Shown: piece by piece, positions 15,131 to 50,940 of the stretch
Numbering within the stretch: position 1 is the first letter of the stretch
Layout of the letters: every line of letters begins with the position of its first letter
Assembly: GCA_965202585.1 (NCBI GenBank)
Contig: OZ241827.1
Span: 64,170,001-64,234,000, forward strand
Reading direction: 5' to 3'
Length of the DNA: 64,000 bases
Origin: Thalia democratica
Lineage: Eukaryota
Program-made: the position numbers and the translations under genes
The notes under the pieces: model-generated
The model's input: the letters and a program-made list of their open reading frames with translations, nothing else
The model's database searches: none
Told to the model about the DNA's origin: nothing

Positions 15131-15811
15131 CTATTTATCTTCGAAATCTTCGCAGCACTCCATATCGACCAGCATGTCACGGACCTTCTTCATTTCCTCG
15201 CAATCTTCTCCTGCGCCTTCTCCGTGTTCTTCAGTAGGTTTCTTCAGGAGCGATGTCAACCTTTCTTTGATTTCCTTTTCCAATACAACTTCTGTTTTAA
15301 ACTCTTTCAAACCAATTTTCTCAATTCCGTCTCTTGCCACTTCGTCATCTGGTATATCTTCAATCCAAACCGTCAGATGTGTGAAGAGCTCTGAAAACGT
15401 GCGAATCGTGTCCTTGTGAGTTTTCCAGCTGGAAGCAAGTACTATAAGCAAGCTTTCATCGTCAACGGCTTTCAGCTTGGGCAAAACATTTAGCACGACA
15501 TGTCTGTGCACTTCTTCCACGAACATGTCGTACATTTCTTCGCCCTTTTGGTGATGAATGCAGTCGTACGAGTTACGGAACAAGTTGTCGTCGCCTTCAG
15601 TGAACTGCATGTCTGAAAAGTTGTTTTCCAAGTGATGCCTCGTACCCCGTCTCAAGCTGTTGATCACTCTTTCATGCCTGAGATCTTGATACTTTCTAAG
15701 CTCAGGATACCAGAACTTTTCGTTGAAAGATTTGAGGCAACCCTTGTTGAAAATGATGTCAGCGAGCTCTTCATCCGAGCAAACTTGGTAAACGTCGTTT
15801 AAATCTTCCAT
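15131..15811 (-). CDS. Truncated Cullin-3-like protein (N-terminal cullin-repeat region only), 226 aa, copy A
   Basis: NLFRNSYDCIHHQKGEEMYDMFVEEVHRHV...LASSWKTHKDTIRTFSELFTHL...IEKIGLKEFKTEVV...KVRDMLVDM aligns by eye to Cul3 [30 protein letters not shown]...[22 protein letters not shown]...VYNLGLIIFRDQVV...NACQMLMIL. CDS is uninterrupted; a TTTTACAG acceptor lies about 18 nt upstream of the ATG. Confidence 0.75.
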   Translation of the reverse strand: MEDLNDVYQVCSDEELADIIFNKGCLKSFNEKFWYPELRKYQDLRHERVINSLRRGTRHHLENNFSDMQFTEGDDNLFRNSYDCIHHQKGEEMYDMFVEEVHRHVVLNVLPKLKAVDDESLLIVLASSWKTHKDTIRTFSELFTHLTVWIEDIPDDEVARDGIEKIGLKEFKTEVVLEKEIKERLTSLLKKPTEEHGEGAGEDCEEMKKVRDMLVDMECCEDFEDK

Positions 15812-25700: not shown

Positions 25701-27189
25701 TTTAAACAAAATTCAGTTAAAGAAACTGAAAGTTTAAAACAAGTTTTAAATGTTAAGTAGTAAAATTTTGAATAGACACAAAGATCTCATCATATATAAA
25801 CTTTTTGTCATCATCAATATTTTTTTACTGAAAAACACTTTTAAAGTAGCTGTACAGTATCTCTTCAAAGCTGTTATACAACTTAACACAGTCTTTTTTA
25901 CATTAAACTTAATTTTAAACTTCCAATAGACCCTAAAACGTGTAATTTAAAAAAAAAACTGTAACTTATTTTGCAAACCTGAAGAAAATTTTCCAAAAAA
26001 AGTTTGCAACCTTGTTTATTTTAAACCAATATTAGATAATTAAAGTCCTTACTTCTCTCTCATATACCCTTGAATCAGACAAATTTGAGAAGAAGCACTA
26101 TTGAAACAGGGTTGCCACACACTCATGATAACTCAGCATATTTTGAAGGTTTTAAATATCTTAAAACAACTGAGTGTGTTATGAATTTTTTTTCTTAGGC
26201 CCAGGCTGACTCAGTACAGTTTTGTTTTTTTTTTCAAAAAAAAGGTAGTTTAAAGACTTTTTATAAATCTCAGAACAGTTTTTATTACTTTTTGAAGTAA
26301 AATCTGCTTAATTTAATTGCACTGTTTTGTTATTTAAAATCTAATATTGTTGAAAAATTAGGTACATCTATATAAAAAACAATAAAAGATTTTGAAAATA
26401 CTTATGTGACTCAGAACATTTATATTTGACTTAAACAGTGACAATCCTGTAGAAAATATGAATTTAAATCAATATAAAATTTGTAAGGTTTTTAAAATTA
26501 TTTGTTTAAAATTTAAATATTTTCACAACTTACACGGTTTCCAAAAAACCTGGAACTTGTTAATTTAGGAATAATAAACTGGAGTTTGGGACATTTTGAA
26601 TAACACCTGGAAAAACCAAGAGACTCTAATAAAAGAAAATCTTTTCAACTTTAATTTTTTAATATTTTAATTTTAAACAGTTGGTACACTTAATGCAATA
26701 AAATATTGACTTAACACATAAATGTATTATATCAATTTTTTATAATTGCAATACAGTTTAACTAACCTAAATTGTAAACATTTAGAGTTAAGGTAACAAC
26801 TCAAGTAGGTTGTTTTTAAATGTTTTTTTGTATTTAGAATTTTGAAACTAATAAATGTTAGTATTTAAAAATACAAATTAGTACATAATTAACAAACAGT
26901 TTTAGGAGTTATATTTAAAAATTTTCGTTTTACTTATATAAAAAAACATTTTCTTTATGTAATTCCTTTGCATTATATATTTGCATTTTAATACATGTAA
27001 ATTTTTTGCATAAAAACAAAGGAGTTTTCTATAAATATATTTATATAGTTTTTAGTAAATCTCTAAGTATTAATTATAGTGATAATATGGTTCTTTATTG
27101 ATTGCTCCTCCAGTTAAACAAAACATATAATTACTAACCTATTAAATAATTTGAATTTATTCATTTTACAGATAGTTTATCTAAAAATA

Positions 27190-27873
27190 ATGGCAGATCC
27201 AAACGACAAAAAGTACCAAAGTTGCTCGGATGAAGAGTTTTATGACATTGTTTTCAATAAGGGATGCCTTGATAGTTTCAACGAAAAGTACTGGTATCCT
27301 CAGCTTAGAAAGTATCAAGACTTCAGGCATGAAAGAGTGATTAACAGCTTGAGACGGGGTACAAGGCATCACTTGGAAAAAAACTTTTCAGACATGCAGT
27401 TCGCTGAAGGCGAAGACAACATGTGGTACAATTCGTACGACTGCACACACCACCAAAAAGGCGATGAAATGTACGATATGTTTGTGGAAGAAGTGCACAG
27501 ACATGTCGTGCTAAATGTTTTGCCCAAGCTGAAAGCCGTTGATGATGAGAACTTACTTGGTGTACTTGCTTCCAGCTGGAAAACTCACATGGACACAATT
27601 AGCACGTTTTCAAAGCTCTTCGAGCATCTGACGCTTTGGATTGAAACAGTTCCAGAGGATGAAAAGCCAAGAGACGGAATTAAGAAAATAGGTATGAAAA
27701 AGTTTAAAACAGAAGTTGTATTGAATGAGGAAGTCAAAGAAAGGTTGACATCGCTCCTGAAGAAACCTACTGAAGAACACGGAGAAGACGCAGGTGAAGG
27801 ATGGGAGGAGATAAAAGAGGTCTATGATATGCTGGTCGATGTGTATTGCTGCGAAGATTTTGAAAATAAATAG
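27190..27873 (+). CDS. Truncated Cullin-3-like protein, 227 aa, copy B (about 79% aa identity to copy A by manual count)
   Basis: Intact ORF from ATG 27190 (MADPNDKKYQSC...), preceded by a TTCATTTTACAG acceptor; colinear with copy A over its full length. Confidence 0.75.
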   Translation: MADPNDKKYQSCSDEEFYDIVFNKGCLDSFNEKYWYPQLRKYQDFRHERVINSLRRGTRHHLEKNFSDMQFAEGEDNMWYNSYDCTHHQKGDEMYDMFVEEVHRHVVLNVLPKLKAVDDENLLGVLASSWKTHMDTISTFSKLFEHLTLWIETVPEDEKPRDGIKKIGMKKFKTEVVLNEEVKERLTSLLKKPTEEHGEDAGEGWEEIKEVYDMLVDVYCCEDFENK

Positions 27874-32229: not shown

Positions 32230-33660
32230 TTTAGTTCAAAATAAATATTTTAGTTATATCTTCAATTAAAAGTTTAACTGACAGTAATGCATTGATTACC
32301 TTTAAAGACCACAAGGAAAACTTTCTTGATAACTTAAAATGCAAACTCCTGAATCCAGCAAAATCAAGTATTGGAATATTCAGTAAAATAAATTTAGACG
32401 AAATAACCCCTAAAATTAAAGAAAAGACTAAATTGCAACAGTGGAAAAACAACGACAATGTTATAACATGGTTTAATAAAATCACCAACAAAAGTAGTTA
32501 CACGTTCATAAAATTAGAAGTAAACGAAAATAACCAGCTCAGACATAGAAACTATACTGCACTCTTGCAAGACAGTCCTTATACATGACAACATAGTTTG
32601 GATCAAAAAGGCTGCGAAAGAAGACCTATTTGACGTGCCGATTGGAAGTTACCATGGCGCGAATTAACCGATTTGTTCCTATTAAATAATCTAAACCAAC
32701 TTTTATCTAAAGAAAACTTCGGGTTATACCGCGATGATGGCCTTTTGATAATTAGAAAACGTTCAAAAAGAATCATAGAAAAAGGATATCAGAGCAGATT
32801 TCTCGGAACAAAACTTAAGAAATAAGATTGAAATAGACAGCAGCAAGGTATATTTCCTGGATATTTCACTTGATCTACAAAATACTTTTACCATCTCTAC
32901 AGAAAATCTAACGCAAAAGAAAAATACATACGTATAAATTCTAACCACCCACCAAGTGTCAAAAGAGTGCTACATAATATGATACAAAATAGATTATCTA
33001 CTCTGTCAAAAAACGAATCTATGCTTAACAAATACAAAGAACCGTACGAAGAAGCGTTAAAAACAGTGACTTTAATAAGGTCCTAGAATACTCAAATCAA
33101 AAGGTGGCACAGCTGACAAAAAAAGAAAAAGAAGAAAAAAAAAGAAAGTATTGTACTACAACCCTCCATTTAGCTCAACTTTAAAAACCAAACTAGGAAA
33201 AGAATTTCTAAAGCTAGTGGACAAACACTTCCCAGAAAAACGGACCTCTTAATAAAATTCTGAACAGAAACACGATCAAAATTAGTTACTCATCTATGCC
33301 TAACATAGAATCTGGAATTAGTAAATCAAATCTTAAAATCATAGAGGAGAGCAAAAGCCAAGAGAAAAATGAAACAACTTGCAATTGCAGAGTTAAAACA
33401 TCATGCCCAGTGGAAGGTAAATGTCTTTCCAGAAGTGTTATATACAAAGCCACGGTAACACACAACAACAAAGAGTACCATTATATTGGATCTACAGCAA
33501 AAAACCTTTAAAATAAGATAAAACGAGCATATGCACAGTTTCAGAAACAAAAATATGAGAGAATCAACGAAACTGAGCTCTTTCATCCAGGCCGCCAAAT
33601 CCAACAAAGAAATGACCAAAAAATGTTAAGTGGAAGATAATACATAAAATTAATCAACGC
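32230..33660 (+). mobile_element. Degenerate Penelope-like element, left part (RT and GIY-YIG), interrupted by the LTR element
   Basis: ITFKDHKENFLDNLKCKLLNPAKSSIG; FGLYRDDGL; NCRVKTSCPVEGKCLSRSVIYKATV...YIGST; frame ends ...VKWKIIHKINQR at the LTR junction. Confidence 0.88.
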
Positions 33661-34956
33661 TGTAGGACACTTGTGCAAAATCTTATTTTGCCTTGTGTCC
33701 AAATTTTTATAATTTAAAGGAATTAATGTTTTTCACTTGATATTATATTTTTTCCTTAAAAAAGAAAACATTGAATAAATATAGTAAAACTGTTTTCCGA
33801 AAAAAAAAACTATTTTTCACAAACAAAATAAGTGCTAGTTAAAATGATTGTTGTCTTTGATTTCTTGATTAAACTGGAAATTGCTGTTCATGGGTGTGGC
33901 TAAGAGAAAATGAGAGAATAAAATGAGAGATCAAGTGATCTACAGTCCAAAGTCCAGGAAAATGAGAGAATCAAATGAGAGATTGCGTGATTTATAGAAA
34001 ATTCTAGAAAAAGAATTCAAAATCTATAAATACGCCCGATCAGAGCATGAAGCGGGCAATCCACCACGAAACAAGCAAGAAGCGACACTCTGCTCCGCAA
34101 AAGAAATAACATCGTCAATAAACAAGCAAGATGATTTCAACAACCATCTAATCGAAGAAGCCCACGCATTCTGTGGCATCGAGAATTTCAGTACTGGAAG
34201 TACTCTTTCATCAAACACTCTAAGTTGGACTCCACGATCGAGTCACAGCGTTCAATCAAGTTTAAGTATACAATCATCTCAGCAAGTAAACCCACACAGA
34301 CTGGGCGCCAACCTTAGCTACACTTCAACGAACAAGTTGTTTTCATACTGTTTGATTCTATCGTATTGTTTATATATTCATATTATCATATATACTCACT
34401 ATTGTATTTGCATTGTAATATTTATATATATTTATATCACCGCATTTATTCACTATTGTATTTGTATTGTAATAATTATACATATTGATATCATCGTGCT
34501 TATTTATTATCGTATTTTATCGCCCGCTCTGCTTACGGAAAGGAAAGGAAAACAGACCACGCTACGTTTAGCAAGATTCTGCAAACGAGACGGACCAACG
34601 TCGAGTGCCAGAAGCTGAGCGAACGGAGACCAGTGACACGCCAAAGGGGGAATCCGGAGCGCGTTTCCTTCTATTTGTTAACATTAAGTGTCTAAACTTA
34701 TTGTGAGCTGTCATTGCGTATTTGTACATAATAAACCAAAATTATTTAGTTTCATTATATTTAGTTAAATAATTATATCATTATGTCCTTAAAACCCTTA
34801 AAAAAGGCATTAGTCCTGAAGGCACCCAGAACTCGGTCCAGAACCGAGATAAGTTGTTCCGAGACTACTGCTAACCTGGAATCCGATGAGATTGTTGAGA
34901 CTGAAACCGAGGCAATTGCGAAGGAAACCAGTGAGGCTCCTAGTCTGGGTAACAAT
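33661..34956 (+). repeat. 5' LTR (1296 bp, TGTAGG...GGTAACAAT)
   Basis: Matches 46097-47392 with only four substitutions noticed and no net indel; TATAAA at 34025-34030; AATAAA at 34730-34735; internal AAATGAGAGA repeats at about 33905-33985. Confidence 0.95.
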
Positions 34957-37596
34957 AATGGCGTCCTCCGAAGCGAACATCCGCCGACCACAGAAGACAA
35001 CACTAAAAAAATTATCGAATTAACTAAATTAGTAGAAAATAGTAACAAACTAATAGAAGATAGATTTAATACTATTTTAAAAACAATTTCTATACAGAAT
35101 TCTCAATCATCGAATATCCCTACAAATACCGAGGTAAGTACAATAAATAATCTTAACCCACATATAAATTTAACAGATCCTGAAAAAATACGACCAACAA
35201 TGACAACAGAGGCGGTATCGACATTACCTACCAACAAAATCCAGACACCAATTCCATTATCAAGCCATGCGTCCAAATCTTGCACAATACCAAGCAATTA
35301 CAATTCAATTTTAAACGTTGACCATTCAAACGAAAGAAATGGAATTCAACCACATGATAATAACCAGTCGATTGCACAGTTACAAAGGCAAATTGACAAC
35401 CTCCAGAAGACAATAAACCAAAATCCTATCCACGAACGTATAACAACCCAACCTAACACCAACCACATTTTTGGCAACCACGATCCGATACCCAGAAATC
35501 AACACTTCCAGCAAACAGTTAATTCGAGGCTATCAAATAGCATTTCTGATAAAGCATTCAGAAAAATTTCAGGGGAAAGACCAAGAGAGGAGTTAAGCCT
35601 CTTCGAGGTTCAATGTAAAAGCCAAGGAACTTTTGATGATCAAACACAATTTCAGATTATTATCGGAATCTGGCCAATTAATGACGTACTTTCTTATGTA
35701 AAAGCTGGCAAACCATCTAGTTATATCTGTTTTAAACAAGAAATCTTAAGTATGACCCCATGTTTGCCAGACATACTTAAACCTCCACCTATCTGGAGCA
35801 GCACTCCAACCTTTAAAGATATCCATCAACTAATATCAAAAGGTCTTACATGCTCTCAAGATGACCTTTACAAACATTTGGCACTGATTTATTGCCCGAA
35901 ATGGGCTAGTAACATTCTAAAAAAAGACCTTGAATTACAAATTGATAAGTTCAAAGGTCGGGTTATGTGGACTCTTGAACAAGGCCCAATTGATTTGAAA
36001 ACAAATTACAACAATAGAAAATCAAACAACCAGTATAATTTTAATGACAAATTTCACAACGCATTCAACCAACAACAAAACCAAAACTTTTCAAATTATA
36101 ACCAGAACAGATACAATCAAGCACAAAACTATAGACCAAATCTAAACCAGTTTGATAATAAAAATAATAACAGGTGTAGTTATCACGTTAGGTTCGGTGA
36201 AAAATCCAATAATTGTGAAGGCCAACAATGCGATATGTACCAAAAATTTTTAGAGAAAAAATTAAGCTTTCTCAAAAATAAACCTGCAGCAGTTAACATG
36301 TCAATAATACAAGATATTTCGAATGCTGAACAAAGTAAAAATTCCACTCAAGACAAACCAGCAAACAGTAATAAAGTAGATGAATGCATTACTAACGACA
36401 GAAATAATGAGGAAATTAAACAAGAAACAAACGAAATAGATGATAAATTCATTAAAAGGAAATTGCCTTATGAAACAAAACTAAAAAACAATACTGAACT
36501 ATTAATAATTGCCGACAATGAAACCTCTGTACAATATCTTTTTGATACTGGTGCAGAAGTTTCGATCATACCCAAATCCATGGTTGACACATATGAAAAG
36601 GACAAGTCAACGCCTAATATATGCGACATAAATGGCAAAACATCTAAAGCATTAGGTTATTCAATGAAGTACGTTAAAATTGGCCTGAAACCGGACCTGC
36701 CACATTCTTTCTACGTAATAGACACAGATATTCCTTTTGCAATTCTAGGGTTAGATTTCATAATTAAACATAAATTAACAATAATACCACAAGAGAAAAC
36801 TATCGTACAAGGTGATTCAGGAGTTAAACTGAAATTAAAACAGCTAACTACTCCTGAAACAAAAATGAAAATAGAAGTAGAAAATCTCCTAAATCTTTTT
36901 CCTGAAATCGACAAAGAACCAAACTACAAAGAAAAGCCCAAGCACAACCATGTCTTAGATATAAAACTTGAAAAAGAATTTTCACCCCGACACCAAAGAG
37001 CAAGGAAAACTAACAAAACTATTTCAAAGGAAATAGAAGATAATTTTGATAAATTACTCAAACAAGGGGCGGTAATAAGAGGCATTTCTGAAATAGTCTC
37101 ACCTTTAACTGTAGTCAGAAAAAAGAATGGAAAGCCAAGGGTATGTGAGGATTACCAATATATTAACCAATGCACTAAAATAATGAGCTACCCTTTACCA
37201 AATATTGACGATCTTTCTTCTATTATACCAGTCAACTCTAAAGTTTTTTCAACACTCGACCTGAGAGAAGCATATTTGAATCTTCCCTTAACTTACCGAG
37301 CACAAAAAGTAGCAGCCATGATTTCTCAATATGGCACATTTTTGCCGTTAAGAACAACCTTCGGCCTTAAGAATGCCCCAATGGCATTCCAAAGGCTTAT
37401 GGATGACATAATGGCTCCATGCCATAATTTCAGCTTTACATACATAGATGACATTATAATTTATTCGAAATCAATGGAAGAACACATGCAACATCTGTTT
37501 GAAGTATTGTTTCAACTTAACAAATTTGGATTGCATAACAATAGGAAAAATGTAAATTCGCCGCTGAAGAAGTTCAATACCTTGGACACATACTGA
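34783..37596 (+). CDS. gag-pol: Gag-protease-reverse transcriptase polyprotein (single frame; frameshifted near end of RT)
   Basis: CSYHVRFGEKSNNCEGQQC Gag CHCC-type motif; YLFDTGAEVSIIP and FAILGLDFI protease motifs; RT motifs PRVCEDY, FSTLDLREAY, FGLKNAPMAFQR, YIDDIII. RT continues in another frame as KCKFAAEEVQYLGHILSSKG from about 37550. Confidence 0.95.
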   Translation: MSLKPLKKALVLKAPRTRSRTEISCSETTANLESDEIVETETEAIAKETSEAPSLGNNNGVLRSEHPPTTEDNTKKIIELTKLVENSNKLIEDRFNTILKTISIQNSQSSNIPTNTEVSTINNLNPHINLTDPEKIRPTMTTEAVSTLPTNKIQTPIPLSSHASKSCTIPSNYNSILNVDHSNERNGIQPHDNNQSIAQLQRQIDNLQKTINQNPIHERITTQPNTNHIFGNHDPIPRNQHFQQTVNSRLSNSISDKAFRKISGERPREELSLFEVQCKSQGTFDDQTQFQIIIGIWPINDVLSYVKAGKPSSYICFKQEILSMTPCLPDILKPPPIWSSTPTFKDIHQLISKGLTCSQDDLYKHLALIYCPKWASNILKKDLELQIDKFKGRVMWTLEQGPIDLKTNYNNRKSNNQYNFNDKFHNAFNQQQNQNFSNYNQNRYNQAQNYRPNLNQFDNKNNNRCSYHVRFGEKSNNCEGQQCDMYQKFLEKKLSFLKNKPAAVNMSIIQDISNAEQSKNSTQDKPANSNKVDECITNDRNNEEIKQETNEIDDKFIKRKLPYETKLKNNTELLIIADNETSVQYLFDTGAEVSIIPKSMVDTYEKDKSTPNICDINGKTSKALGYSMKYVKIGLKPDLPHSFYVIDTDIPFAILGLDFIIKHKLTIIPQEKTIVQGDSGVKLKLKQLTTPETKMKIEVENLLNLFPEIDKEPNYKEKPKHNHVLDIKLEKEFSPRHQRARKTNKTISKEIEDNFDKLLKQGAVIRGISEIVSPLTVVRKKNGKPRVCEDYQYINQCTKIMSYPLPNIDDLSSIIPVNSKVFSTLDLREAYLNLPLTYRAQKVAAMISQYGTFLPLRTTFGLKNAPMAFQRLMDDIMAPCHNFSFTYIDDIIIYSKSMEEHMQHLFEVLFQLNKFGLHNNRKNVNSPLKKFNTLDTY
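34959..34976 (+). promoter_or_regulatory. Putative primer-binding site TGGCGTCCTCCGAAGCGA
   Basis: TGG (complement of tRNA CCA) starts 2 nt after the LTR end. The first 8 nt, TGGCGTCC, match the complement of a typical tRNA-Asn 3' end; tRNA identity is not established. Confidence 0.65.
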
Positions 37597-37613
37597 GTAG
37601 CAAAGGTTTCTAT

Positions 37614-39311
37614 ATGCAACAAAGTAAAGTTGAAGCTATCGAAAACTTCCAAACCCCACAAACCATCAAACATTTGCGGTCCTTTCTTAGCTGTCTAAAC
37701 TACTACAACAAATTCGCTCCGAAACTGGCAGAAATACTTCAACCATTATATAAATTAACAACAGGAGAGCCAAAAAATTCTAGAAAAAAATTAATCTGGG
37801 AAACTGAACACCAAGCAGCATTTGAAAAAGCTATACAAACTCTAGTTTCGGCCACTCATCTCTCTTATGAAGACCCAAAAAAAGAACTAGTTCTTTCTAC
37901 AGACGCATCCTCTACTCATATTGGAGCCGTCCTAGAACAAAAGCATGAACCAGGAAATTATAAACCTTTAGCATTTTTTTCAAAAAAACTACCAGTCCTT
38001 AAATCAGTAAGATCCGTATTTTTCAGAGAACTCACAGGTCTTTATCTGAGTATTAAACATTTTAAGGTCAGAATCATAGGAAGACAGCTTCGGGTAAGAA
38101 CAGACCATAGAGCCTTGGTAGATGCTATTAACAATGCTACGGGAAATCATTCACCAAAAGAAGAAAAATATATTGCTATAATAAAAGAATATGCCCCCTT
38201 GATGGAATTTATTCCAGGCGATCAAAACACAACAGCTGACTTATTAAGCCGTCCGGTACTCGTTGCATACAACGATAAAAACTCAGAAGAAGAGGAAGAA
38301 AACAGTGGAGAAATTGATGTTAACGATAAAACAATAAATTCTTACACAAATTATGATTTAGACCAGGAAATCACACAAAATGAATCAGAATCTAATCAAT
38401 TTATTCCCTTAAATATTAAGATAATTTCAGAAACGCAAAGTCAAGCCAATGTACATTTACCTACCCTCATAGCAAACTCTCAAAAGCAACAAAACCAGAT
38501 CATTTTTGAGTCTAGATTGATAGATAATTGTGTAGTACAAGGTATCATTGAAACAAAAACCCATAGTTTTCGTATATGGGTTCCGCCCAAATTAAGATCT
38601 AATATCTTAAATCAAAATCATAACATCTTACACCAAGGAATTGATAAAACTTTAACAGCAGTAGGATCTAATTTCTGGTGGCCAAAAACGAAAAAAGATG
38701 TTGAACTCTTTGTAAAAACTTGTATAACATGCCAAAAAGTGAAGGTAAGGAAATATAATAGACCTAAATTAGGTTGTTACCCAAATTCACTTGGAAGATT
38801 TGACTATGTTCATGCAGACTTGGTAGGACCTTTGGTTGAATCTCAAAACATGAAATATATACTTACCATTAAAGAACGGTATACTGGTCTTTTTGCATCA
38901 TGTCCCTTACCCAACAAAATGGCAGAGACCGTAAAGAACGCATTTCTCCAAAATTGGATTGGTCATTATGGAATACCATGTACAATAGTTACAGATAATG
39001 GCAAAGAATTCTTTAACCATCATTTCGAAACTATGTGTTCGGATCTATCTATCAAACATAATCTCACCGCGCCATACCACCCTGAAACCAACGGAATGGT
39101 AGAAAGACAACATAGAGAGTTAAAAACGGCCTTAAGAACATTGAAGAATAAACTTAACTGGGTGCAACATCTTCCTATTATCACTCTAGCTCTAAACAAT
39201 CAGAGCATTGGTCGTAAAGGATTTAGCCCTGCTCAATATACTTTTGGAACACCCTTAAATATTCCTGGAAAGTTATTCTTTCCGAACACAAACACATTCG
39301 AACCTCCTTAA
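37614..39311 (+). CDS. pol: RT connection, RNase H and integrase (HHCC, DDE); ends at an in-frame TAA within integrase
   Basis: LSTDASSTHIGAVL, RELTGL, RTDHRAL, NTTADLLSR (RNase H); HNILHQG...CITC (Zn finger); VHADLVGPL, IVTDNGKEF, PETNGMVERQHRELK (DDE). Confidence 0.95.
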   Translation: MQQSKVEAIENFQTPQTIKHLRSFLSCLNYYNKFAPKLAEILQPLYKLTTGEPKNSRKKLIWETEHQAAFEKAIQTLVSATHLSYEDPKKELVLSTDASSTHIGAVLEQKHEPGNYKPLAFFSKKLPVLKSVRSVFFRELTGLYLSIKHFKVRIIGRQLRVRTDHRALVDAINNATGNHSPKEEKYIAIIKEYAPLMEFIPGDQNTTADLLSRPVLVAYNDKNSEEEEENSGEIDVNDKTINSYTNYDLDQEITQNESESNQFIPLNIKIISETQSQANVHLPTLIANSQKQQNQIIFESRLIDNCVVQGIIETKTHSFRIWVPPKLRSNILNQNHNILHQGIDKTLTAVGSNFWWPKTKKDVELFVKTCITCQKVKVRKYNRPKLGCYPNSLGRFDYVHADLVGPLVESQNMKYILTIKERYTGLFASCPLPNKMAETVKNAFLQNWIGHYGIPCTIVTDNGKEFFNHHFETMCSDLSIKHNLTAPYHPETNGMVERQHRELKTALRTLKNKLNWVQHLPIITLALNNQSIGRKGFSPAQYTFGTPLNIPGKLFFPNTNTFEPP

Positions 39312-40451
39312 TTATTTGAAACAGAGATATTTATAAAAAATATGAAAGAATTTACTAGGGAGTGGAGAAACCCAGACGAAGCTACAACATATATCGAAAA
39401 ACATTTACATGAAGCAAAACAAGTTCTAGTAAAAAATCACACAAGACATTCACTAGATCATTTGTACAAAGGCCCTTTTAATGTAATAGAACGAGGTCCG
39501 CATTCTTTCATAATTGACCAAGGGTCAGAATTTAAAAAAATTGCTATTGGAAATTTGAAAGCATATTTTCCTAGATATCCAACTGCAAGTAGGGACAGAT
39601 CTGAAAATACTAACTATAATTTGAGAGCGAGAAACAAACTCAAAATTAATACAAAATTCAGCATGATGAGCGAAAACAAACTAAAATATATTCAACGTCC
39701 ATTAATCAGAGACAAATCTAATGGGCTACTATATTTAATTGATTCAGGCTCGGATGTTTCCATCATGCCTGCACATCTAACTAATTACATAAATTGCGCC
39801 AAAACTGATGAAATAAAGAGTTTCTCTGGTCAAACTGAAAGAGCACTAGGGATAAGTCAAGCTAACATTAACATCGGTATTCCCAAACTGTACTCCTACG
39901 AATTTTCAGTTTTTCCCAATGGGCACAATTTTGCAATTCTGGGACTAGATTTCATAAATCAATGGAATATCGTTATTGCTATAGCTGCAAACGCGATTTT
40001 TCATGTCAATGGCAACGATTCGCCAATCAGAATAGAAATAGAAAGAAACCATATTGAAAAAATGCAAGAAAAACCATTAGATCTTAGGACAGATCGCTCT
40101 AAAAATGATAGCAAAATAACAATACCAAAAATGAAAAAATCAATAAAGGAAACAGTTGAAGTTACAAGAATGGAAAAATATCAAAGTAAGCACGAAGGTC
40201 TTAAAAACCTCTTGACAAAGAAAGTTCGAAAGAAATTTAACCCAAGAGACCAAAAATATAATAACAACGATTTAATACATAATAAAAAAACATGTTGCAA
40301 AACTCTTTGGAACTATATCCAACTCAGAACTCAACTAGAACAGGACCGCTTCACCAATATTTTACAGCGAAATATTAAGCAAATCATGGTTGGTTTTCAC
40401 AACAAACGTAAAAAAAGTTTAAAAAAAAAAAAAACTATAATAAATAGCTAG
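39312..40451 (+). CDS. Integrase C-terminal GPY/F domain followed by a second retropepsin-like protease and a basic tail (same frame as 37614 ORF)
   Basis: 39342-37614 = 1728, so both ORFs share a frame and only TAA 39309-39311 separates them. HLYKGPFNVIERG (GPY/F); YLIDSGSDVSIMP (Asp at 39741) and FAILGLDFI. Confidence 0.88.
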   Translation, partial: LFETEIFIKNMKEFTREWRNPDEATTYIEKHLHEAKQVLVKNHTRHSLDHLYKGPFNVIERGPHSFIIDQGSEFKKIAIGNLKAYFPRYPTASRDRSENTNYNLRARNKLKINTKFSMMSENKLKYIQRPLIRDKSNGLLYLIDSGSDVSIMPAHLTNYINCAKTDEIKSFSGQTERALGISQANINIGIPKLYSYEFSVFPNGHNFAILGLDFINQWNIVIAIAANAIFHVNGNDSPIRIEIERNHIEKMQEKPLDLRTDRSKNDSKITIPKMKKSIKETVEVTRMEKYQSKHEGLKNLLTKKVRKKFNPRDQKYNNNDLIHNKKTCCKTLWNYIQLRTQLEQDRFTNILQRNIKQIMVGFHNKRKKSLKKKKTIINS

Positions 40452-42433
40452 TATCAACGTTTTAAAATTCAAATAGATTCTTTTAATTAGCTTTTATTTA
40501 ATTGATAATAATTATTTATTAACCAATTAATTCGTTTTTTTTTTTTTGTTTTTTTTTTTTTTTTAACTTAATTGAAAGACATGATAAAACAAAGGCTTAA
40601 TATAACAATACGGGTTGGAAACTAATAAATAAAGGAATCCAAAACATCACACTTAACAGTCATAACGATCATTTACACTTTGCTTCGTACAATTAAAATT
40701 ATATCGATAAATTAACTAATAGCATTTTTTTTTTAACAATCAAAAACTTTATGTATAAAACTATGTTTAAAAAAATATATAAACATAAAACTAAATAATT
40801 TAAATAAAAAGTATTAAAAATAAAAAATAATAAACAAGAAAAAAAAACAAAAAAATATATATATATATCTAAATATAAATATATTAGTATATATAAAATA
40901 TATCTGAATTCTTAAACTAACACCAAAATTTATGTACAAACACGCTTTTACTTTTTCTCAATGCATATTGGTACTACTCCATCTAATGCGAATGACTAAA
41001 TGCAGTAAACTTAGTGTGTACATACTAAATGTAAAGAAAAATCGTTTTTCTATTTTTCTCTATTTAGCTTCACTTCTGTTATTTTTATCTTTCCCGTGCA
41101 CCTGTAATTAATTTTAAATTGACATTTTTGTGTTATTATAGATAAATTTAGTAACTAAACAAGGGAATCATGTTTACGACACACCTGCAAAACAAACTTA
41201 ACTATTAGGGTTAAATTCTTTCGAATGAACTCGCTTTAAGTTTTATTAAACGTTTCCCAATTTGAATCGCTACACGTGCTTCGTTACATTGATGCACGTG
41301 TCAATAAAATCAGAAGGGCTTAAAGACTCCCTTTAACGCTTTGTTACTATCGTTAATTCTAAAATTAAAACTTAATAGCACTTGTGAACAAATTGGTAAA
41401 CGTTTCTTATCTTTTTTTCTTTCGAGTTATAACTTTCATTCACTGAAACAAGATTTATTTCAGATTTGTATTCATTTAGAACAGCTTTCATTAGAATATG
41501 TAACTCAATCTTAAAATTGTAAGTTTAGATTATGTGTTTTTGCTTCTTAGTTTGTTAATTTTTTTTAAAATAAACAAAAGTTTATTTTTGTAAAAATAAT
41601 TCTGTGTTTATTCTTTTTTCGAAATTGAATTAATAATTGTGTTAATCATAATCAAATTAGTTGCCAGATGTATGTTATTTTAATTTTCGTTATTAGAAGT
41701 ATGCATTATTACTTTTTGTCTTCGTTTTTTCTTTTCACTTTGTTTATCAAACACAGATTATAATTGACATTAAATATATCCACTGACTATTTGAATTTTA
41801 ATTTACTCTACAATTTTCTTTTTTTCTTTCTTTCCGCTTTCCACCAATCAATTGTCCCATCTTCATAAAAAAACAATACTTAAAACATGAATTATATATA
41901 TTTATACACCCTAAAAAAGAAACTTAATAGTAATAATTGTGGAATTAAGTAAATAAAAACAAAAAATTATCAAATTAGTAATACATAATTAAATATCAAA
42001 AATAAAGATATCTATAAATATACAATAATAAATATAAAACCTTGTAGTAAATATTTTGAACAATAACCAAACAAAATACGCGTAATATCAGACGATATCT
42101 CAAAATGACTACCAAGTTAATCAAACCAAACTCAATTAACCATAAGTATAATAATTTGTTTATGTAATTCCTGACCAATACATTTCAGAACAACATTCAA
42201 AATGCATGTGTAATCTATCCGCTTAATTCAGTTTAGCAATCTTCAGTCATCATCACTATTAAATAAACACTAAAAAGAACTAATATTCGGCGTTATGCCG
42301 TACATTTTGTTGATTATACATGCATTTACACAAATACACTATACACATAATTGCCTTGCCACATATCGCATAAAAACATTATTAACAAAGCTAATAACAA
42401 ACTAATATTTTCCAGATTTAGCTTTTAATAATT

Positions 42434-44257
42434 ATGAAGTTATTCTTTCTCAATATAAGTCTGTTTGCCTGTCTTTTCTTTCTTGGAGACAACGTTTTTT
42501 GTCAATCTAATAAAACAATCTTAGACCTAAGATTTCAAAATGTAGACATATGCTTCGATAAGCACATTGTAAAAACTTACTTTATAACTCCTTCAATCGG
42601 AGGTTGCGCTGAACCGGACACAACTTACCAAATAATTAAAGATATTAATATATACCCGCCTGCAGATACGACAATACACATAAACGCAATAGCGTGCAGA
42701 GAGGTCGTGTCCACGTATAAAAACATAATGTGGTGGACTTTCACAAAAAGGTCTACATTAATAAATAAAAGGTCTTTTTCAGTCGCAAGCGATCGCTGTG
42801 TAAGGTGGGTTAAGCAAAGAACTGACCCAATTCTTGGGGATCTATTTAAACATTCAATAACTCCTCATACTTATGTTACACTGAACAAAAAACAAAATAT
42901 TTTCTATTATCTTCAGGGAGTGACTGAGAATGTTAGAAACGCACAAACTTTAGAAACAACCTTAATCTTTAGTAGGCAAACCCTAACAGGTAGCCATTTT
43001 ACCACGTCAGACTTAGAATGTAATGTTTTAAAGGGGGTATGTATTTCCAAGACTGACACATTCTTATTCACTCCTTTTGAGAATAAATGTAAAACTTGGA
43101 AACCATATAAAGGGTTATCTCTACTTAAATACAACATGAAAAATGGAAACCTTTACCAGGTTCCTGAACTAGACCTTGCGTTTCATAGGTTAATACCTTG
43201 CCCTGAATATGTACACAAATGCATTAGAGAAGTCGATGAAAATAAACAAATAAGGTGTACACCCACAAATTTTGCTCTTAGTTTTTCAAATATTTCGACG
43301 CTAGTAGATGATAACTTAAAAATAAAACTAAACCAATATAATAATATAAGTGCACGAGACAATATATTAAGTCAAGCTATTCAATCTTTAGCCATTAAAA
43401 CAAATTCAGCCATAGAAAAGCTCGCCCAAGAGTTCTCAAGTGTGCTGTGCAAATTGGGTGAAATCTCAATAACCAACTTGCGCAACACCCAATATCGCAA
43501 ACCCAGTGAGACTTTGAGTCTCATGCTGGGCAGGAAAGTTAAGGCAACCATGATAGGTGAGTTACTTGCACAAATCTCGTGCACCAAAGTAAACGCAACC
43601 TTAGTACCAACTCTACGTATCGGCGATGAAATGTCTCCAAGGCCTCTATTTAGGATTCATTTCGCAAACGAGTCAAAAATCGCACAATACACTTCGGAGG
43701 GCTATTTAAGATGGGGTCTCAAAGGCTTAACCTCTCATTTAACTGAACAAGTAACCATATTTGTAATAGAAGGAATCGCCATAGCGTTTAAAAATGGGTC
43801 TCTCTTAAATGAACTGCCTGAGATAAATAAATTAGGGCTTCATCCTACTTCTGTTATTCCTGATTCTATAGACTATGATGAAGGAATACTTTTAAATGAA
43901 TTATCGACTGCGTCAGACCCAAATAATTTGGGTTCAATGAACCACATGCTGCAAAGCATACTGGGAATCACTTCTGAGCATCTTATAGCTAATGGGGTAA
44001 ACAAGGAGCTGTTAAATAAATATTTGACTGTCCCTATGAATAAAAATGAACATCTGTCCTTCATTAAAGAAATTAAACAATTCTTCCGCCCCAAAGTTTC
44101 TAACATTATAAAAAAAATCGCTCTATTCGGATCTTTAACAATCACCTTTCTAACTACGCTCTTAATAACGTATATCTTTTGTGGATTTACACTTAAAGCT
44201 ATTATTAAGAGTACCAGAACAAAAACAAAAAATAATAAAAATGAAAACCAGAGTTAA
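42434..44257 (+). CDS. env: Envelope-like type I membrane glycoprotein, 607 aa, probably class III (gB-like) fusogen
   Basis: N-terminal hydrophobic signal MKLFFLNISLFACLFFLG; Cys-rich ectodomain with NKT, NIS, NAT, NES, NGS sequons; C-terminal TM IALFGSLTITFLTTLLITYIFCGF; short basic tail; lies between pol and 3' LTR. Confidence 0.85.
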   Translation: MKLFFLNISLFACLFFLGDNVFCQSNKTILDLRFQNVDICFDKHIVKTYFITPSIGGCAEPDTTYQIIKDINIYPPADTTIHINAIACREVVSTYKNIMWWTFTKRSTLINKRSFSVASDRCVRWVKQRTDPILGDLFKHSITPHTYVTLNKKQNIFYYLQGVTENVRNAQTLETTLIFSRQTLTGSHFTTSDLECNVLKGVCISKTDTFLFTPFENKCKTWKPYKGLSLLKYNMKNGNLYQVPELDLAFHRLIPCPEYVHKCIREVDENKQIRCTPTNFALSFSNISTLVDDNLKIKLNQYNNISARDNILSQAIQSLAIKTNSAIEKLAQEFSSVLCKLGEISITNLRNTQYRKPSETLSLMLGRKVKATMIGELLAQISCTKVNATLVPTLRIGDEMSPRPLFRIHFANESKIAQYTSEGYLRWGLKGLTSHLTEQVTIFVIEGIAIAFKNGSLLNELPEINKLGLHPTSVIPDSIDYDEGILLNELSTASDPNNLGSMNHMLQSILGITSEHLIANGVNKELLNKYLTVPMNKNEHLSFIKEIKQFFRPKVSNIIKKIALFGSLTITFLTTLLITYIFCGFTLKAIIKSTRTKTKNNKNENQS

Positions 44258-44670
44258 TGACATTATAATTTGTAGCTCATACTTAATTTTTTTTTCTCTT
44301 CTTCTCCTTCTTCAAATTCTTTTGATTAATGTAAAAGCTCGCTACTTTTATTCTATTTTCTTGTCTTTATTTGGTATATCAATAAAAAAAGAAAAAATTA
44401 TACAAAACAATCTTTCTATTCTAAACACTATCTTTGCCATCCTTGACTTGAAGGACCTCTTTCTCATTTTTCTGCATAAGTCTAGATAAAAAGAAAAAGA
44501 TAGCCAAAAATTCTTTTGTTTTCTTTTTACAATAAAACAAGTTTAGTACCAATCCTTACTACATTTATGAATCGTTGATAATTTATTTTTGCTTTCTTTT
44601 TGTTACTGTAACTATAAAAAAACATTTGAATTGTCAACAGTCATTAAAAATTAAAAAAAAAAAAAAAGAG

Positions 44671-45018
44671 ATGAATCTTTTACAAGTAGAAGACCTTGAC
44701 TTTCTGTTGGACGAAGAACTACCTGAATTAGATCATGAAATGGTTGAAAACTTCTTCCGGCCAATCCAACAAGAAGAAGAGTTTGAAAAGGATAGCGACC
44801 TAGGTTATGAAAGTGACGACGAAAACAAGTACATCGAAGAGAGAGAAGCTCCACTGATAGCTCCACCAGTGCCAATCATTGAACAGAATTGGCATCGTTT
44901 GAGGGATGACGAAAGGATGTTGGATCCCGAGCTTCTAACAATCCTAATCGACATCATGTTAGAGGCCGAAAGACTGGGAGATAACGTTTTTGAAGAAGTG
45001 TATGAGGGCGACTTTTAA
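44671..45018 (+). CDS. Small acidic accessory ORF (115 aa) of the LTR element, unknown function
   Basis: ATG 44671 to TAA 45018; GC and codon-like composition clearly above the flanks; D/E-rich with PLIAPPVP; AATAAA follows at about 45045. Confidence 0.65.
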   Translation: MNLLQVEDLDFLLDEELPELDHEMVENFFRPIQQEEEFEKDSDLGYESDDENKYIEEREAPLIAPPVPIIEQNWHRLRDDERMLDPELLTILIDIMLEAERLGDNVFEEVYEGDF

Positions 45019-45125
45019 AGGAAAGGTATGTGAACATTAATGCTAAATAAAAGATTTTTTTTTTAAATTATAATAGTCATAAAAAAATTAACATGTTTTT
45101 TTTTTGTTGTTTCTTCCCAAGTATT

Positions 45126-45291
45126 NNNNNNNNNNNNNNNNNNNNNNNNNNNNNNNNNNNNNNNNNNNNNNNNNNNNNNNNNNNNNNNNNNNNNNNNNNN
45201 NNNNNNNNNNNNNNNNNNNNNNNNNNNNNNNNNNNNNNNNNNNNNNNNNNNNNNNNNNNNNNNNNNNNNNNNNNNNNNNNNNNNNNNNNNN
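45126..45291. other. Assembly gap (166 N)
   Basis: Run of N inside the 3' non-coding part of the LTR element. Confidence 1.
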
Positions 45292-46096
45292 TTGTCTATA
45301 TATGTGTGTTTATTTTTTATTATTATTATTTGTTTTTCAGATTTTTTTTTGTGTGTACCTTTGACCTTATAAACTACAATAACTCCAGGTAATTAAATAA
45401 TATTAACATTGATTTGCTTCTATCTATTCACTTTTAACCTTAAGCAATCTAGAATTCAAATCTATTATCAACACGTTTATTTGAGTTGTTACCTTTACAC
45501 ATTTTATTACCGAAATCTATCTGAGTAATTCTTTTGAAATACAAAATTTTAATATGACAACGTTGTATACTTATCGAATTAATTTTTTTTTTGAATGTTT
45601 GAACAAGTACATCATTTGAATCAGTTATAAGTTAAACTCAATTTTCTTCTATCCTTCGATGTTTAAAATTTTTCATTGTAAACCTGTTTTGTTTCTCAGT
45701 AAATCTTTGATTTTCTAATAATACATTTTTCCATTAAATATTAATATTTCTTAACTAAAGAAAATAGAAAAATAAAAAACATTGTTAAAATTGTTATTTG
45801 TACTTTAAATTTATTTGCATTTATCATCTCAACCCTCCGACAACTTGATAATGTATCATTTTTTTTTAGAAAGATTAAAGTTATTAATTTGAACATTTTT
45901 TTTTTTTTTTTTCAAGCATGATAAACCCGCTCTAATTCCTTATTATTCTTTTCTTTCAAAAGTTATTTTACACTTAGACATTTTAAGTTAATTTTCGTCC
46001 CCTTAATAATAGTTTTTTCTCATAAGTTTTTTTTACAAGTTAATAAAAAATTTTTTTAGTAAAAGAAAAATAAAAAAAAAGAAAAACATAAGTCGA

Positions 46097-47392
46097 TGTA
46101 GGACACTTGTGCAAAATCTTATTTTGCCTTGTGTCCAAATTTTTATAATTTAAAGGAATTAATGTTTTTCACTTGATATTATATTTTTTCCTTAAAAAAG
46201 AAAACATTGAATAAATATAGTAAAACTGTTTTCCGAAAAAAAAAACTATTTTTCACAAACAAAATAAGTGCTAGTTAAAATGATTGTTGTCTTTGATTTC
46301 TTGATTAAACTGGAAATTGCTGTTCATGGGTGTGGCTAAGAGAAAATGAGAGAATAAAATGAGAGATCAAGTGATCTACAGTCCAAAGTCCAGGAAAATG
46401 AGAGAATCAAATGAGAGATCGCGTGATTTATAGAAAATTCTAGAAAAAGAATTCAAAATCTATAAATACGCCCGATCAGAGCATGAAGCGGGCAATCCAC
46501 CACGAAACAAGCAAGAAGCGACACTCTGCTCCGCAAAAGAAATAACATCGTCAATAAACAAGCAAGAAGATTTCAACAACCATCTAATCGAAGAAGCCCA
46601 CGCATTCTGTGGCATCGAGAATTTCAGTACTGGAAGTACTCTTTCATCAAACACTCTAAGTTGGACTCCACGATCGAGTCACAGCGTTCAATCAAGTTTA
46701 AGTATACATTCATCTCAGCAAGTAAACCCACACAGACTGGGCGCCAACCTTAGCTACACTTCAACGAACAAGTTGTTTTCATACTGTTTGATTCTATCGT
46801 ATTGTTTATATATTCATATTATCATATATACTCACTATTGTATTTGCATTGTAATATTTATATATATTTATATCACCGCATTTATTCACTATTGTATTTG
46901 TATTGTAATAATTATACATATTGATATCATCGTGCTTATTTATTATCGTATTTTATCGCCCGCTCTGCTTACGGAAAGGAAAGGAAAACAGACCACGCTA
47001 CGTTTAGCAAGATTCTGCAAACGAGACGGACCAACGTCGAGTGCCAGAAGCTGAGCGAACGGAGACCAGTGACACGCCAAAGGGGGAATCCGGAGCGCGT
47101 TTCCTTCTATTTGTTAACATTAAGTGTCTAAACTTATTGTGAGCTGTCATTGCGTATTTGTACATAATAAACCAACATTATTTAGTTTCATTATATTTAG
47201 TTAAATAATTATATCATTATGTCCTTAAAACCCTTAAAAAAGGCATTAGTCCTGAAGGCACCCAGAACTCGGTCCAGAACCGAGATAAGTTGTTCCGAGA
47301 CTACTGCTAACCTGGAATCCGATGAGATTGTTGAGACTGAAACCGAGGCAATTGCGAAGGAAACCAGTGAGGCTCCTAGTCTGGGTAACAAT
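46097..47392 (+). repeat. 3' LTR
   Basis: Copy of 33661-34956; followed by AACGC. Confidence 0.95.
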
Positions 47393-47397
47393 AACGC

Positions 47398-49599: not shown

Positions 49600-50940
49600 A
49601 GAAAAACAATATATAAAGTCTTTTAAAGTCGGTTACTGGAGGTTTGTTCCAATATAATAAGCAATTATATACACAAATAGATGGCGTAAGCATGGGAAAC
49701 CCACTAGCGCCTACTATAGCAAATTACTTCATGGGAACATTGGAAAAAAAATCTCTTTAACACCGAAGATGAAAATAATCCAGTTTTATACCTTCGATAT
49801 GTCGACGACATATTCTGTATCTTCCGAAAAGATGTCTCATTCGAAAAATTCCACAAAAAGTTAAATAAACTACATAAGTCTATCAACTTCACATATGAAT
49901 TAGGTGGAAACGAACTCCCATTTTTGGACATTAATATCAAACTAAAGAGAGAGGAAATAACAACAAAGGTACACAAAAAAGACATTGATACAGATGTCAT
50001 TTTAAATTTTAGTGCAGTGGCACCAATTAAATGGAAAAGAGCTCTAATACTGTGGTTTGTAAACAGAGCGAGAATTATAGCTTCTATGCATAACATTTAC
50101 AAACAAGAAATCACAAGCTTAAAAGAAAAATTCTTTAAGAATGGTTATCCAAAGAAATTTGTTGATGACATAATTGAAAGATCTCTTAATATTAATAAAG
50201 ACTGCACTAAACAAAAACTAAGTAACTCAGATTTCAAAAATGTGATAAAGATACCTTATATTGGAAAACCTAGTATCGAGTATAAAAAGAAACTAGAAAA
50301 GCTTCTAAACAATTACATCGAAGAATTCAAAGTAATCTTTACCACAACAAAAGTAAGCAATTACTTCAGTAATAAAGATAGGACACCCCATGAATTAAAA
50401 TCAAACGTGGTCTATGAGTATAAATGCTCTTATGATAAGAGTATCCAATATATTGGATTCACTTCACGACCATTAGTAGAAAGAATTAAAGAACATTTAA
50501 AAGGCAAAACATCGGTATCGGACCATATTAGCAATTGTAATGTTTGTAAAAATGAAAAAATAACTGTTAATAATTTTGGAATTTTGAAAGAATGTAGAAA
50601 TAAATTTGAGACCCTGATAAGTGAAGCTCTACTAATTAAACGCTATAATCCAATTTTAAATAAACAATTAATTAAACCGGGTATTACCCACACATTAAGA
50701 ATTTTTGATTAGTTTGATATATATTAGTTTAACAATTTGTTAGTACTTATGTAAAATGTTATTTTATTAGAGTTTATAATCTTAATTTATAAAATTTTTA
50801 TATAATGTATCACTTATAAATTTTTTTTTGTATATTTAGTTGTTTATCACTAATTTTATTTATTTTGCACAGTATTTTGTTGATAATGACTTATTGAAAG
50901 TCGAAACGTCGTCATGCGAATAAATTTTAAACGTAGAATG
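49600..50940 (+). mobile_element. 5'-truncated Penelope-like element (different family), RT C-terminal half plus GIY-YIG ORF
   Basis: QIDGVSMGNPLAPTIANYFMG; frameshift in poly-A at about 49750; YLRYVDDIFCIF, LPFLDI; VVYEYKC...YIGFTSRPLVERIKEH; open to 50712. Confidence 0.9.
50861..50922 (+). ncRNA. Hammerhead-ribozyme-like motif, U3:A8 variant, at PLE 3' end
   Basis: TTGATAA-t-GACTT-attga-AAGTC-GAAAC-gtc-GTC: perfect 5-bp stem II and GUC triplet; stem I only partly paired. Confidence 0.5.

Follow-up and report, generated by a model that had tools for sequence, protein, structure and literature searches.

A 64,000-nucleotide stretch of Thalia democratica DNA (assembly GCA_965202585.1, contig OZ241827.1, positions 64,170,001 to 64,234,000 of the forward strand), hereafter the window, in whose coordinates all positions are given, holds a complete long terminal repeat (LTR) retroelement of the Ty3/gypsy type. 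The pol of this lineage contains, behind the integrase, a genuine second retropepsin-fold (family A2-type) domain. This domain, here called PR2 (39693–40046, + strand), follows in the same polyprotein as the canonical protease PR1 (36505–36783, +), which precedes the reverse transcriptase, and it is conserved and under purifying selection. We consider it probable, at about 0.55, that PR2 is an active dimeric protease sharing the processing of the polyprotein with PR1, which would remain the main enzyme; this reading draws on sequence comparison, and other possible roles of the domain are weighed below.

The frame of the integrase C-terminal GPY/F module (LYKGPF) runs stop-free into DKSNGLLYLIDSGSDVSIMP and on to FAILGLDFI. 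An earlier sequence-only reading of the window had quoted such strings for both proteases, placed their catalytic Asp codons at 36544 and 39741 and described the frame as continuous from the GPY/F motif, all of which proved accurate. It had also taken PR2 for a diverged paralogue of the normal protease, and the comparison bears this out, as an 86-residue BLASTP alignment of PR1 with PR2 shows 37% identity and a single gap (E = 2e-15), far beyond chance, and the modelled fold is that of a retropepsin. The search of PR2 against domain models, which that reading had proposed as a check, likewise returned protease families: PR2 alone matches the Pfam families gag-asp_proteas (E = 5.6e-5) and RVP (E = 3.9e-3). 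PR1, with E = 2.7e-7 for RVP and likewise for gag-asp_proteas, clears both curated cut-offs, whereas PR2 clears neither, though both of its matches are significant. Both sequence hallmarks of the family are present in PR2, namely the hydrophobic-hydrophobic-D-[ST]-G-[AS] signature and the I/L-[IL]-G-x-D-[FL] block with the flap and structural glycines. The active site is D-S-G-S in PR2 (Asp codon 39741–39743) and D-T-G in PR1, and the surrounding signature reads LYLIDSGSD in the window and in its close relatives L003 and L007, and YLVDSGSD in a sister family. In an alignment of 44 PR sequences, all 12 invariant or near-invariant columns are kept in PR2 of the window, and 11 of the 12 in that of the sister family.

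Structure prediction points in the same direction. AlphaFold2, run on PR2 with the 44-sequence alignment, gave a model with a mean predicted local distance difference test score (pLDDT) of 89.2 and a predicted template modelling score of 0.82. When this model was compared with the PDB by Foldseek, the top 33 matches at E <= 1e-3 were all retropepsin-fold proteases, led by Ddi1 RVP (template modelling score, TM, 0.68) and followed by the proteases of XMRV, FIV and HIV (probability 1.00). In the viral library BFVD, aspartyl proteases and the pols of pararetroviruses and retroviruses were found. In a model of the whole PR2-bearing open reading frame (ORF), PR2 stands apart as a high-confidence domain, preceded by about 60 low-confidence residues (pLDDT < 50 over residues 54–114 of the model) that part it from the integrase C-terminal module. 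This linker (39570–39692, +), of low fold confidence and conserved between both families, is thus probably flexible according to the model. The GPY/F module itself (39384–39569, +) resembles the C-termini of about 40 Ty3/gypsy pols and gave a weak match to an integrase C-terminal domain chain in the PDB. A chromodomain after the integrase was considered as well and rejected, as chromodomain models matched neither the PR2-bearing ORF nor the tails of L006 and L007.

The same layout recurs in other copies. Every protein relative stems from a marine metagenome assembly in ENA, and Tara Oceans scaffolds account for several. The unbroken 1865-residue gag-pol proteins P0232 and P0236 belong to the 90% cluster around P0107, as do P0229 (1595 residues) and P0227 (519 residues); each of these four has PR2, with one or two amino-acid differences from the window. 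L007 encodes P0236 in one stop-free frame, and L003 holds the integrase core, GPY/F, PR2 and tail within a single 519-codon frame. A sister family, represented by L005 and L006, has an Env with 78% identity (the P0002 cluster), and the gag-pol of L006 is unbroken over 1964 codons. In both families, PR1 lies at about residues 551–686 and the integrase C-terminus with PR2 and tail at 1521–1845; the PR2 of the sister family shows D-S-G-S and FAILGLDFI without any change, and the linker of that family is well conserved, too. Altogether, the frame is unbroken through PR2 in seven sequences from two families separated by a synonymous divergence (dS) of about 0.87, and the contigs that carry PR2 stem from different samples and assemblers. 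In the window copy, which differs from the unbroken frame of a 98%-identical relative by two single-base frameshifts and one premature stop, none of these breaks falls within PR1 or PR2, nor between the GPY/F module and PR2.

Outside these two families, the 15 nearest pols that reach the integrase C-terminus (P0108–P0124; 34–39% identical in PR-RT, the span from protease to reverse transcriptase) stop 10–50 residues past GPY/F, and about 40 more distant unfused full-length pols from an exhaustive search show the canonical order and end soon past the integrase; all other unfused full-length pols examined end 10–100 residues past the module. The exhaustive phmmer search with the PR2-bearing ORF, covering 1.84 billion representatives, returned many canonical pols and no close relative except a 50-residue read-end fragment. 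A word-indexed search with residues 175–490 of the 519-residue integrase-PR2 protein of L003 gave no match, the query itself included; no relative turned up when JGI metagenome contigs were scanned twice and IMG/VR once, and an exact look-up of the window PR2 ORF gave no match. As far as the searched databases show, PR2 is therefore confined to two closely related families.

Selection along gag-pol was estimated by the Nei-Gojobori method as the ratio of nonsynonymous to synonymous divergence (dN/dS) in a single pairwise comparison of L007 with L006 (overall dS 0.87). The ratio is 0.04 in the reverse transcriptase and in RNase H, 0.07 in the zinc module and core of the integrase, 0.09 in PR1 (95% bootstrap confidence interval (CI) 0.04–0.19), 0.13 in the integrase C-terminus with linker (CI 0.07–0.23; linker 0.13–0.17) and 0.19 in gag. 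For PR2 it amounts to 0.32 (CI 0.16–0.58), and since none of 1000 bootstrap replicates reached 1, PR2 is under purifying selection, as had been proposed from the single sequence. Behind PR2, a Lys-rich C-terminal tail (40047–40378, +), in which a Pfam search found no domain, evolves almost neutrally, with a dN/dS of 0.76 (about 0.65–0.76; CI 0.41–1.44) and 42% amino-acid identity between the two families. In the sister family this tail carries 201-nt (67-codon) tandem repeats, two copies in L006 (6016–6417) and three in L005 (5339–5941), so that the length of gag-pol varies with copy number.

Concerning its origin, PR2 is old. At third codon positions, PR1 and PR2 agree in 35% of cases, roughly what base composition would give, and the third base is common in 13 of the 30 identical residues; the split must therefore be old, and no recent wholesale conversion has taken place. 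On the simplest reading of the sequences, a PR1-type domain was duplicated within the element and gave rise to PR2, whose source would be a protease of PR1's own sub-lineage. PR2, PR1 and the nearest relatives of PR1 have in common the ILGLDF motif and a lengthened loop ahead of it, in contrast to most other PRs. Between the regions downstream of PR1 and of PR2, no homology was found past the 86-residue core. The neighbour-joining tree of 44 PR domains, in which the two PR2s pair in 99% of bootstraps, speaks less clearly for this origin. PR2 adjoins PR1 and P0029 in the point tree, but in a minority of replicates, and none of the 300 bootstrap replicates contained an exclusive clade of PR1 and PR2, since PR1 has more identity with P0029 (43%) than with PR2 (30%); PR2 is thus not firmly placed beside PR1. 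P0029 is a third, more distant PR1-type relative on a contig of only 1030 nt, too short to show its PR2 status. Since the tree does not firmly place PR2 beside PR1, capture from a related element is a possible alternative source. The old duplication proposed by the sequence-only reading accordingly stands with respect to age and selection; the PR tree being weak, duplication as opposed to capture is the simplest, if tentative, reading.

Within the 27 nt coding for FAILGLDFI in PR1 and PR2 of L007 and L006, family-specific synonymous states are common to both domains at three codons. Such sharing could stem from a short conversion tract or from template switching between the two domains at that block, although so few sites give no more than a hint.

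What PR2 does in the element has to be read from its sequence and context; catalysis, dimer partner, substrate and order of events are points that we infer. Gag, PR1, reverse transcriptase, RNase H, integrase, PR2 and tail would form one polyprotein, in which PR2 would be the last folded domain, attached to the integrase module by the flexible linker of about 60 residues. PR2 would be an old copy, most simply duplicated within the element and kept since by selection on it. With a single frame from gag to tail, it would be produced in equal amount to Gag and PR1. PR2 is most likely an active protease because the catalytic D-S-G and the other family-invariant positions are kept. All retropepsins act as dimers, and PR2 would accordingly be expected to work as a dimeric aspartic protease, two copies of which could be brought together by integrase multimerisation or by the packing of Gag-Pol. 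PR2 could then take over part of the cleavage, e.g., the separation of the integrase from the tail or another late or extra cut, whereas PR1 would keep the core processing. Candidate PR2 cleavages would lie at that end of the polyprotein which comprises integrase, linker and tail. As candidate roles of PR2, the sequence-only reading had put forward heterodimers, a second cleavage specificity, e.g., towards Env or host substrates, and a regulated release of the integrase.

Several observations count against an active second protease. PR2 stays below the Pfam gathering cut-offs (24.1 vs. 28.2 bits for gag-asp_proteas, 17.9 vs. 20.7 bits for RVP), it is about three times less constrained than PR1 (0.32 vs. 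0.09), and in the sister family Asn takes the place of a near-invariant glycine of PR2. Moreover, the carriers of PR2 belong to two closely related families only, so that the conservation of its active site is judged across a narrow range of divergence. The main alternative, which we regard as possible albeit considerably less probable, could be a non-catalytic retropepsin-fold module which serves dimerisation or tethering of integrase or Gag-Pol, or peptide binding, and whose active-site residues are retained for structure (the "fireman's grip") and not for hydrolysis. The relaxed constraint relative to PR1 would fit such a role, as would the fact that the closest solved folds are the RVP domains of Ddi1, which are at work inside larger adaptor proteins; targeting or binding modules such as chromodomains sit at the integrase C-terminus of other lineages (PMC13524379), and retropepsin-like domains without the Asp do exist. 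An example of the latter is P0003, a 1336-residue metagenome protein with at least eight tandem retropepsin-like domains, in which the position of the catalytic Asp is not Asp and no Pfam match was obtained; the protein resembles an array of protease-fold repeats that was domesticated or has degenerated. Derivatives of this kind usually lose the Asp, as P0003 did, whereas D-S-G-S and ILGLDF are exact in both families and the invariant positions (12 of 12, in the sister family 11 of 12) are kept despite about 30% identity to every other PR.

An active PR2 could also differ from our preferred reading in its partner or in its expression. That PR1 and PR2 pair as an asymmetric retropepsin heterodimer, within one Gag-Pol chain or between chains, appears unlikely to us; if it were true, the identical nine-residue block and the shared synonymous hints would reflect co-constraint at a common interface. 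Possible but likewise unlikely is a separate or additional production of PR2 from a subgenomic or spliced RNA starting near a Met-Met pair, yielding an accessory protease, e.g., for the Env precursor. Both families keep this Met-Met, which lies about 12 residues before the first PR2 strand; pol and env are parted by a 2-kb spacer that contains a conserved island, and in related elements with env from a marine tunicate, downstream genes are served by internal promoters (PMC4402516). The linker upstream of Met-Met is, however, conserved as protein (dN/dS 0.13–0.17), and no stop separates integrase and PR2 in any intact copy.

Two further explanations would deny PR2 any function in the lineage. 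A functionless relic, be it a decaying duplicate or a nested or recombined fragment of another element, is largely refuted and very improbable. The almost neutral tail with its variable repeat number and the breaks elsewhere in the window gag-pol would be in line with decay, yet the dN/dS of PR2 with 0 of 1000 bootstraps at or above 1 and the intact frame in the seven sequences contradict it. Neither an LTR, a target duplication nor other element fragments were found beside PR2, only the 86-residue core is homologous to PR1, and PR2 is tied to the integrase by the conserved linker; as PR2 matches retropepsins in domain models and structure, is intact in other copies and is no nested fragment, none of the refuting outcomes named by the sequence-only reading came about. 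The chance that the order of integrase and protease results from misassembly, or from two tandem copies read as one, is negligible. Gene models that fuse tandem pol copies do create a spurious integrase-to-protease order, as in P0034 (RT-RH-IN-PR-RT-RH-IN, where RH and IN denote RNase H and integrase) and similarly P0005 and P0014, which are the sole other cases of this order found. In the window, by contrast, PR2 is followed by tail, spacer, env and 3' LTR instead of a second reverse transcriptase, it is only 30–37% identical to PR1, and besides the genome window, contigs that represent at least five samples and different assemblers show the same layout. On these grounds, a nested fragment, a tandem fusion and an assembly artefact were rejected. 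A different arrangement was seen in P0025 (296 residues), which joins a PR domain directly to an integrase GPF module and is probably an internally deleted pol.

The element itself (33661–47392, +; 13,732 nt including one N run) was delimited by its direct repeats, borders and domain content. Self-comparison of the window revealed direct repeats at an offset of 12436, and a 5-bp target-site duplication, AACGC, can be read from the flanks (33656–33660 and 47393–47397). The 5' LTR (33661–34956, +), which begins with TGTAGG, and the 3' LTR (46097–47392, +), with a purine-rich tract just before it, are 1296 nt each and differ at 4 of the 1296 positions. At 99.7% LTR identity the window insertion is young, and together with the unbroken env this identity marks the lineage as recently active. 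Each LTR holds a 54-nt tandem repeat (34371–34517 and 46807–46953). A putative primer-binding-site-like string beginning with TGG (34959–34978, +), assigned from its sequence, lies 2 nt past the 5' LTR and within the gag frame. The gag start codon is located inside the 5' LTR (34783–34956 fall within the LTR), so the open frame crosses this string; L007 and the sister-family L006 use the same start, and nucleotide similarity between L006 and the window begins only 17 nt upstream.

The gag-pol gene, broken in the window copy, extends over 34783–40378 (+), where its end was taken from the homologous 1865-codon frame of L007, which is unbroken; the last open frame of the window as it stands extends to 40451. 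In the part of gag-pol between PR1 and the GPY/F module, Pfam recognises the reverse transcriptase core (37114–37542, +; RVT_1, E = 2.4e-20), RNase H (37797–38192, +; RT_RNaseH_2, E = 2.8e-23, and RT_RNaseH, E = 3.2e-17) and the zinc-binding (H2C2) and catalytic core of the integrase (38580–39149, +; Integrase_H2C2, E = 2.6e-18, and rve, E = 8.4e-12).

An AT-rich spacer of about 2 kb parts pol from env. It contains a conserved non-coding island (41295–41488, +) with 72% identity to L005 and L006, whose counterpart in L006 lies at 7024–7216, while the spacer around it does not align between the families; the island may serve the expression of env, through regulation or in connection with splicing. 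The unbroken env-like gene (42434–44257, +; 607 codons) encodes a signal peptide and a C-terminal membrane anchor and appears gB-like, i.e., class III fusogen-like. It is weakly similar to herpesvirus gB and rhabdovirus-type fusion proteins, with matches below the Pfam cut-offs (Glycoprotein_B, E = 1e-5, 25.6 bits vs. a cut-off of 43; Monjiviricetes_fusion, E = 7e-5), and its protein relatives P0001 (99%) and P0002 (78%) both carry a precomputed PF00606 assignment. Downstream of env and ahead of the 3' LTR, a 147-codon acidic ORF (44575–45018) closely precedes the N run (45126–45291), and a family search with it gave no significant match; the contigs of the sister family stop soon after env. 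The 64-kb window, which is strongly AT-rich (G+C about 25%), yielded neither tRNA genes nor Rfam matches. On the host side, ORFs at 15131–15811 (–), 27151–27873 (+), 49924–50712 (+) and 63025–63297 (+) include two Cullin N-terminal-like ORFs on opposite strands and one with a GIY-YIG nuclease domain; one host-side ORF has a weak BspA-type LRR (LRR_5) match.

In its structure, the element agrees with the Ty3/gypsy elements (Metaviridae), with which it shares the LTRs, the 5-bp target duplication, the order PR-RT-RH-IN, the H2C2 and DDE core of the integrase and the GPY/F module; the best PR-RT matches all have Ty3/gypsy-type domain sets. It departs from them, however, by having two proteases in place of the single one upstream of the reverse transcriptase, and by a second retropepsin and a tail of about 110–230 residues past GPY/F. 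It also appears to fit the invertebrate Ty3/gypsy elements with a gB-type env ("errantiviruses" in the wide sense) surveyed in PMC13524379: behind its gag-pol lies an env-like gene that codes for a signal peptide and a membrane anchor and is weakly similar to gB, and multiple near-identical copies are present. The survey reports one PRO per pol, chromodomains past the integrase in some clades and a duplicated RNase H, and it makes no mention of a second protease.

In chromoviruses, too, the integrase C-terminus is extended by a folded module (PMC13524379), which in their case is a chromodomain and in the window element a retropepsin. The dual RNase H of retroviruses, Tat-lineage plant elements and insect errantiviruses likewise presents an enzymatic domain of pol twice, with one copy less constrained, and constitutes a precedent for duplication or acquisition of a pol domain with division of labour (PMC4408406, PMC10508981 and PMC13524379). 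The RNase H copies are, however, adjacent, whereas PR1 and PR2 stand about 1000 residues apart and flank RT-RH-IN. Ddi1-type RVP domains and retroviral proteases resemble PR2 in fold (Foldseek TM 0.6–0.7, E about 1e-5) and in D-[ST]-G; they differ in sequence (13–22% identity) and in context, being cellular adaptors or a single retroviral PR, with no second PR in pol. When full texts, which do not span the whole literature, were searched for LTR elements with a further protease, be it duplicated or additional, nothing relevant came up, and in the literature searched the layout of an integrase followed by a protease is without a published description. This agrees with the sequence-only reading, which knew of no standard family with this layout: it is absent from every other unfused pol examined and from the literature searched.

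Retroviral-type proteases are obligate dimers, and the timing of their activity controls particle maturation. Against this background, a recently active lineage with two diverged retropepsins under selection in one polyprotein represents a natural protease duplication inside pol, which parallels the known duplication of RNase H. The system allows sequence and structure to address how a duplicated viral protease splits labour or switches partner. Annotation pipelines which rely on domain order, or which flag a protease after the integrase as nesting or chimerism, would mislabel the PR2 lineage. The classic account of pepsin-like enzymes starts from the duplication of a retropepsin-type domain. 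If PR1 and PR2 did form a heterodimer, it would constitute a natural intermediate between symmetric viral homodimers and the two-lobed pepsin-like enzymes, and would free protease activation or specificity from its sole dependence on PR1 homodimerisation.

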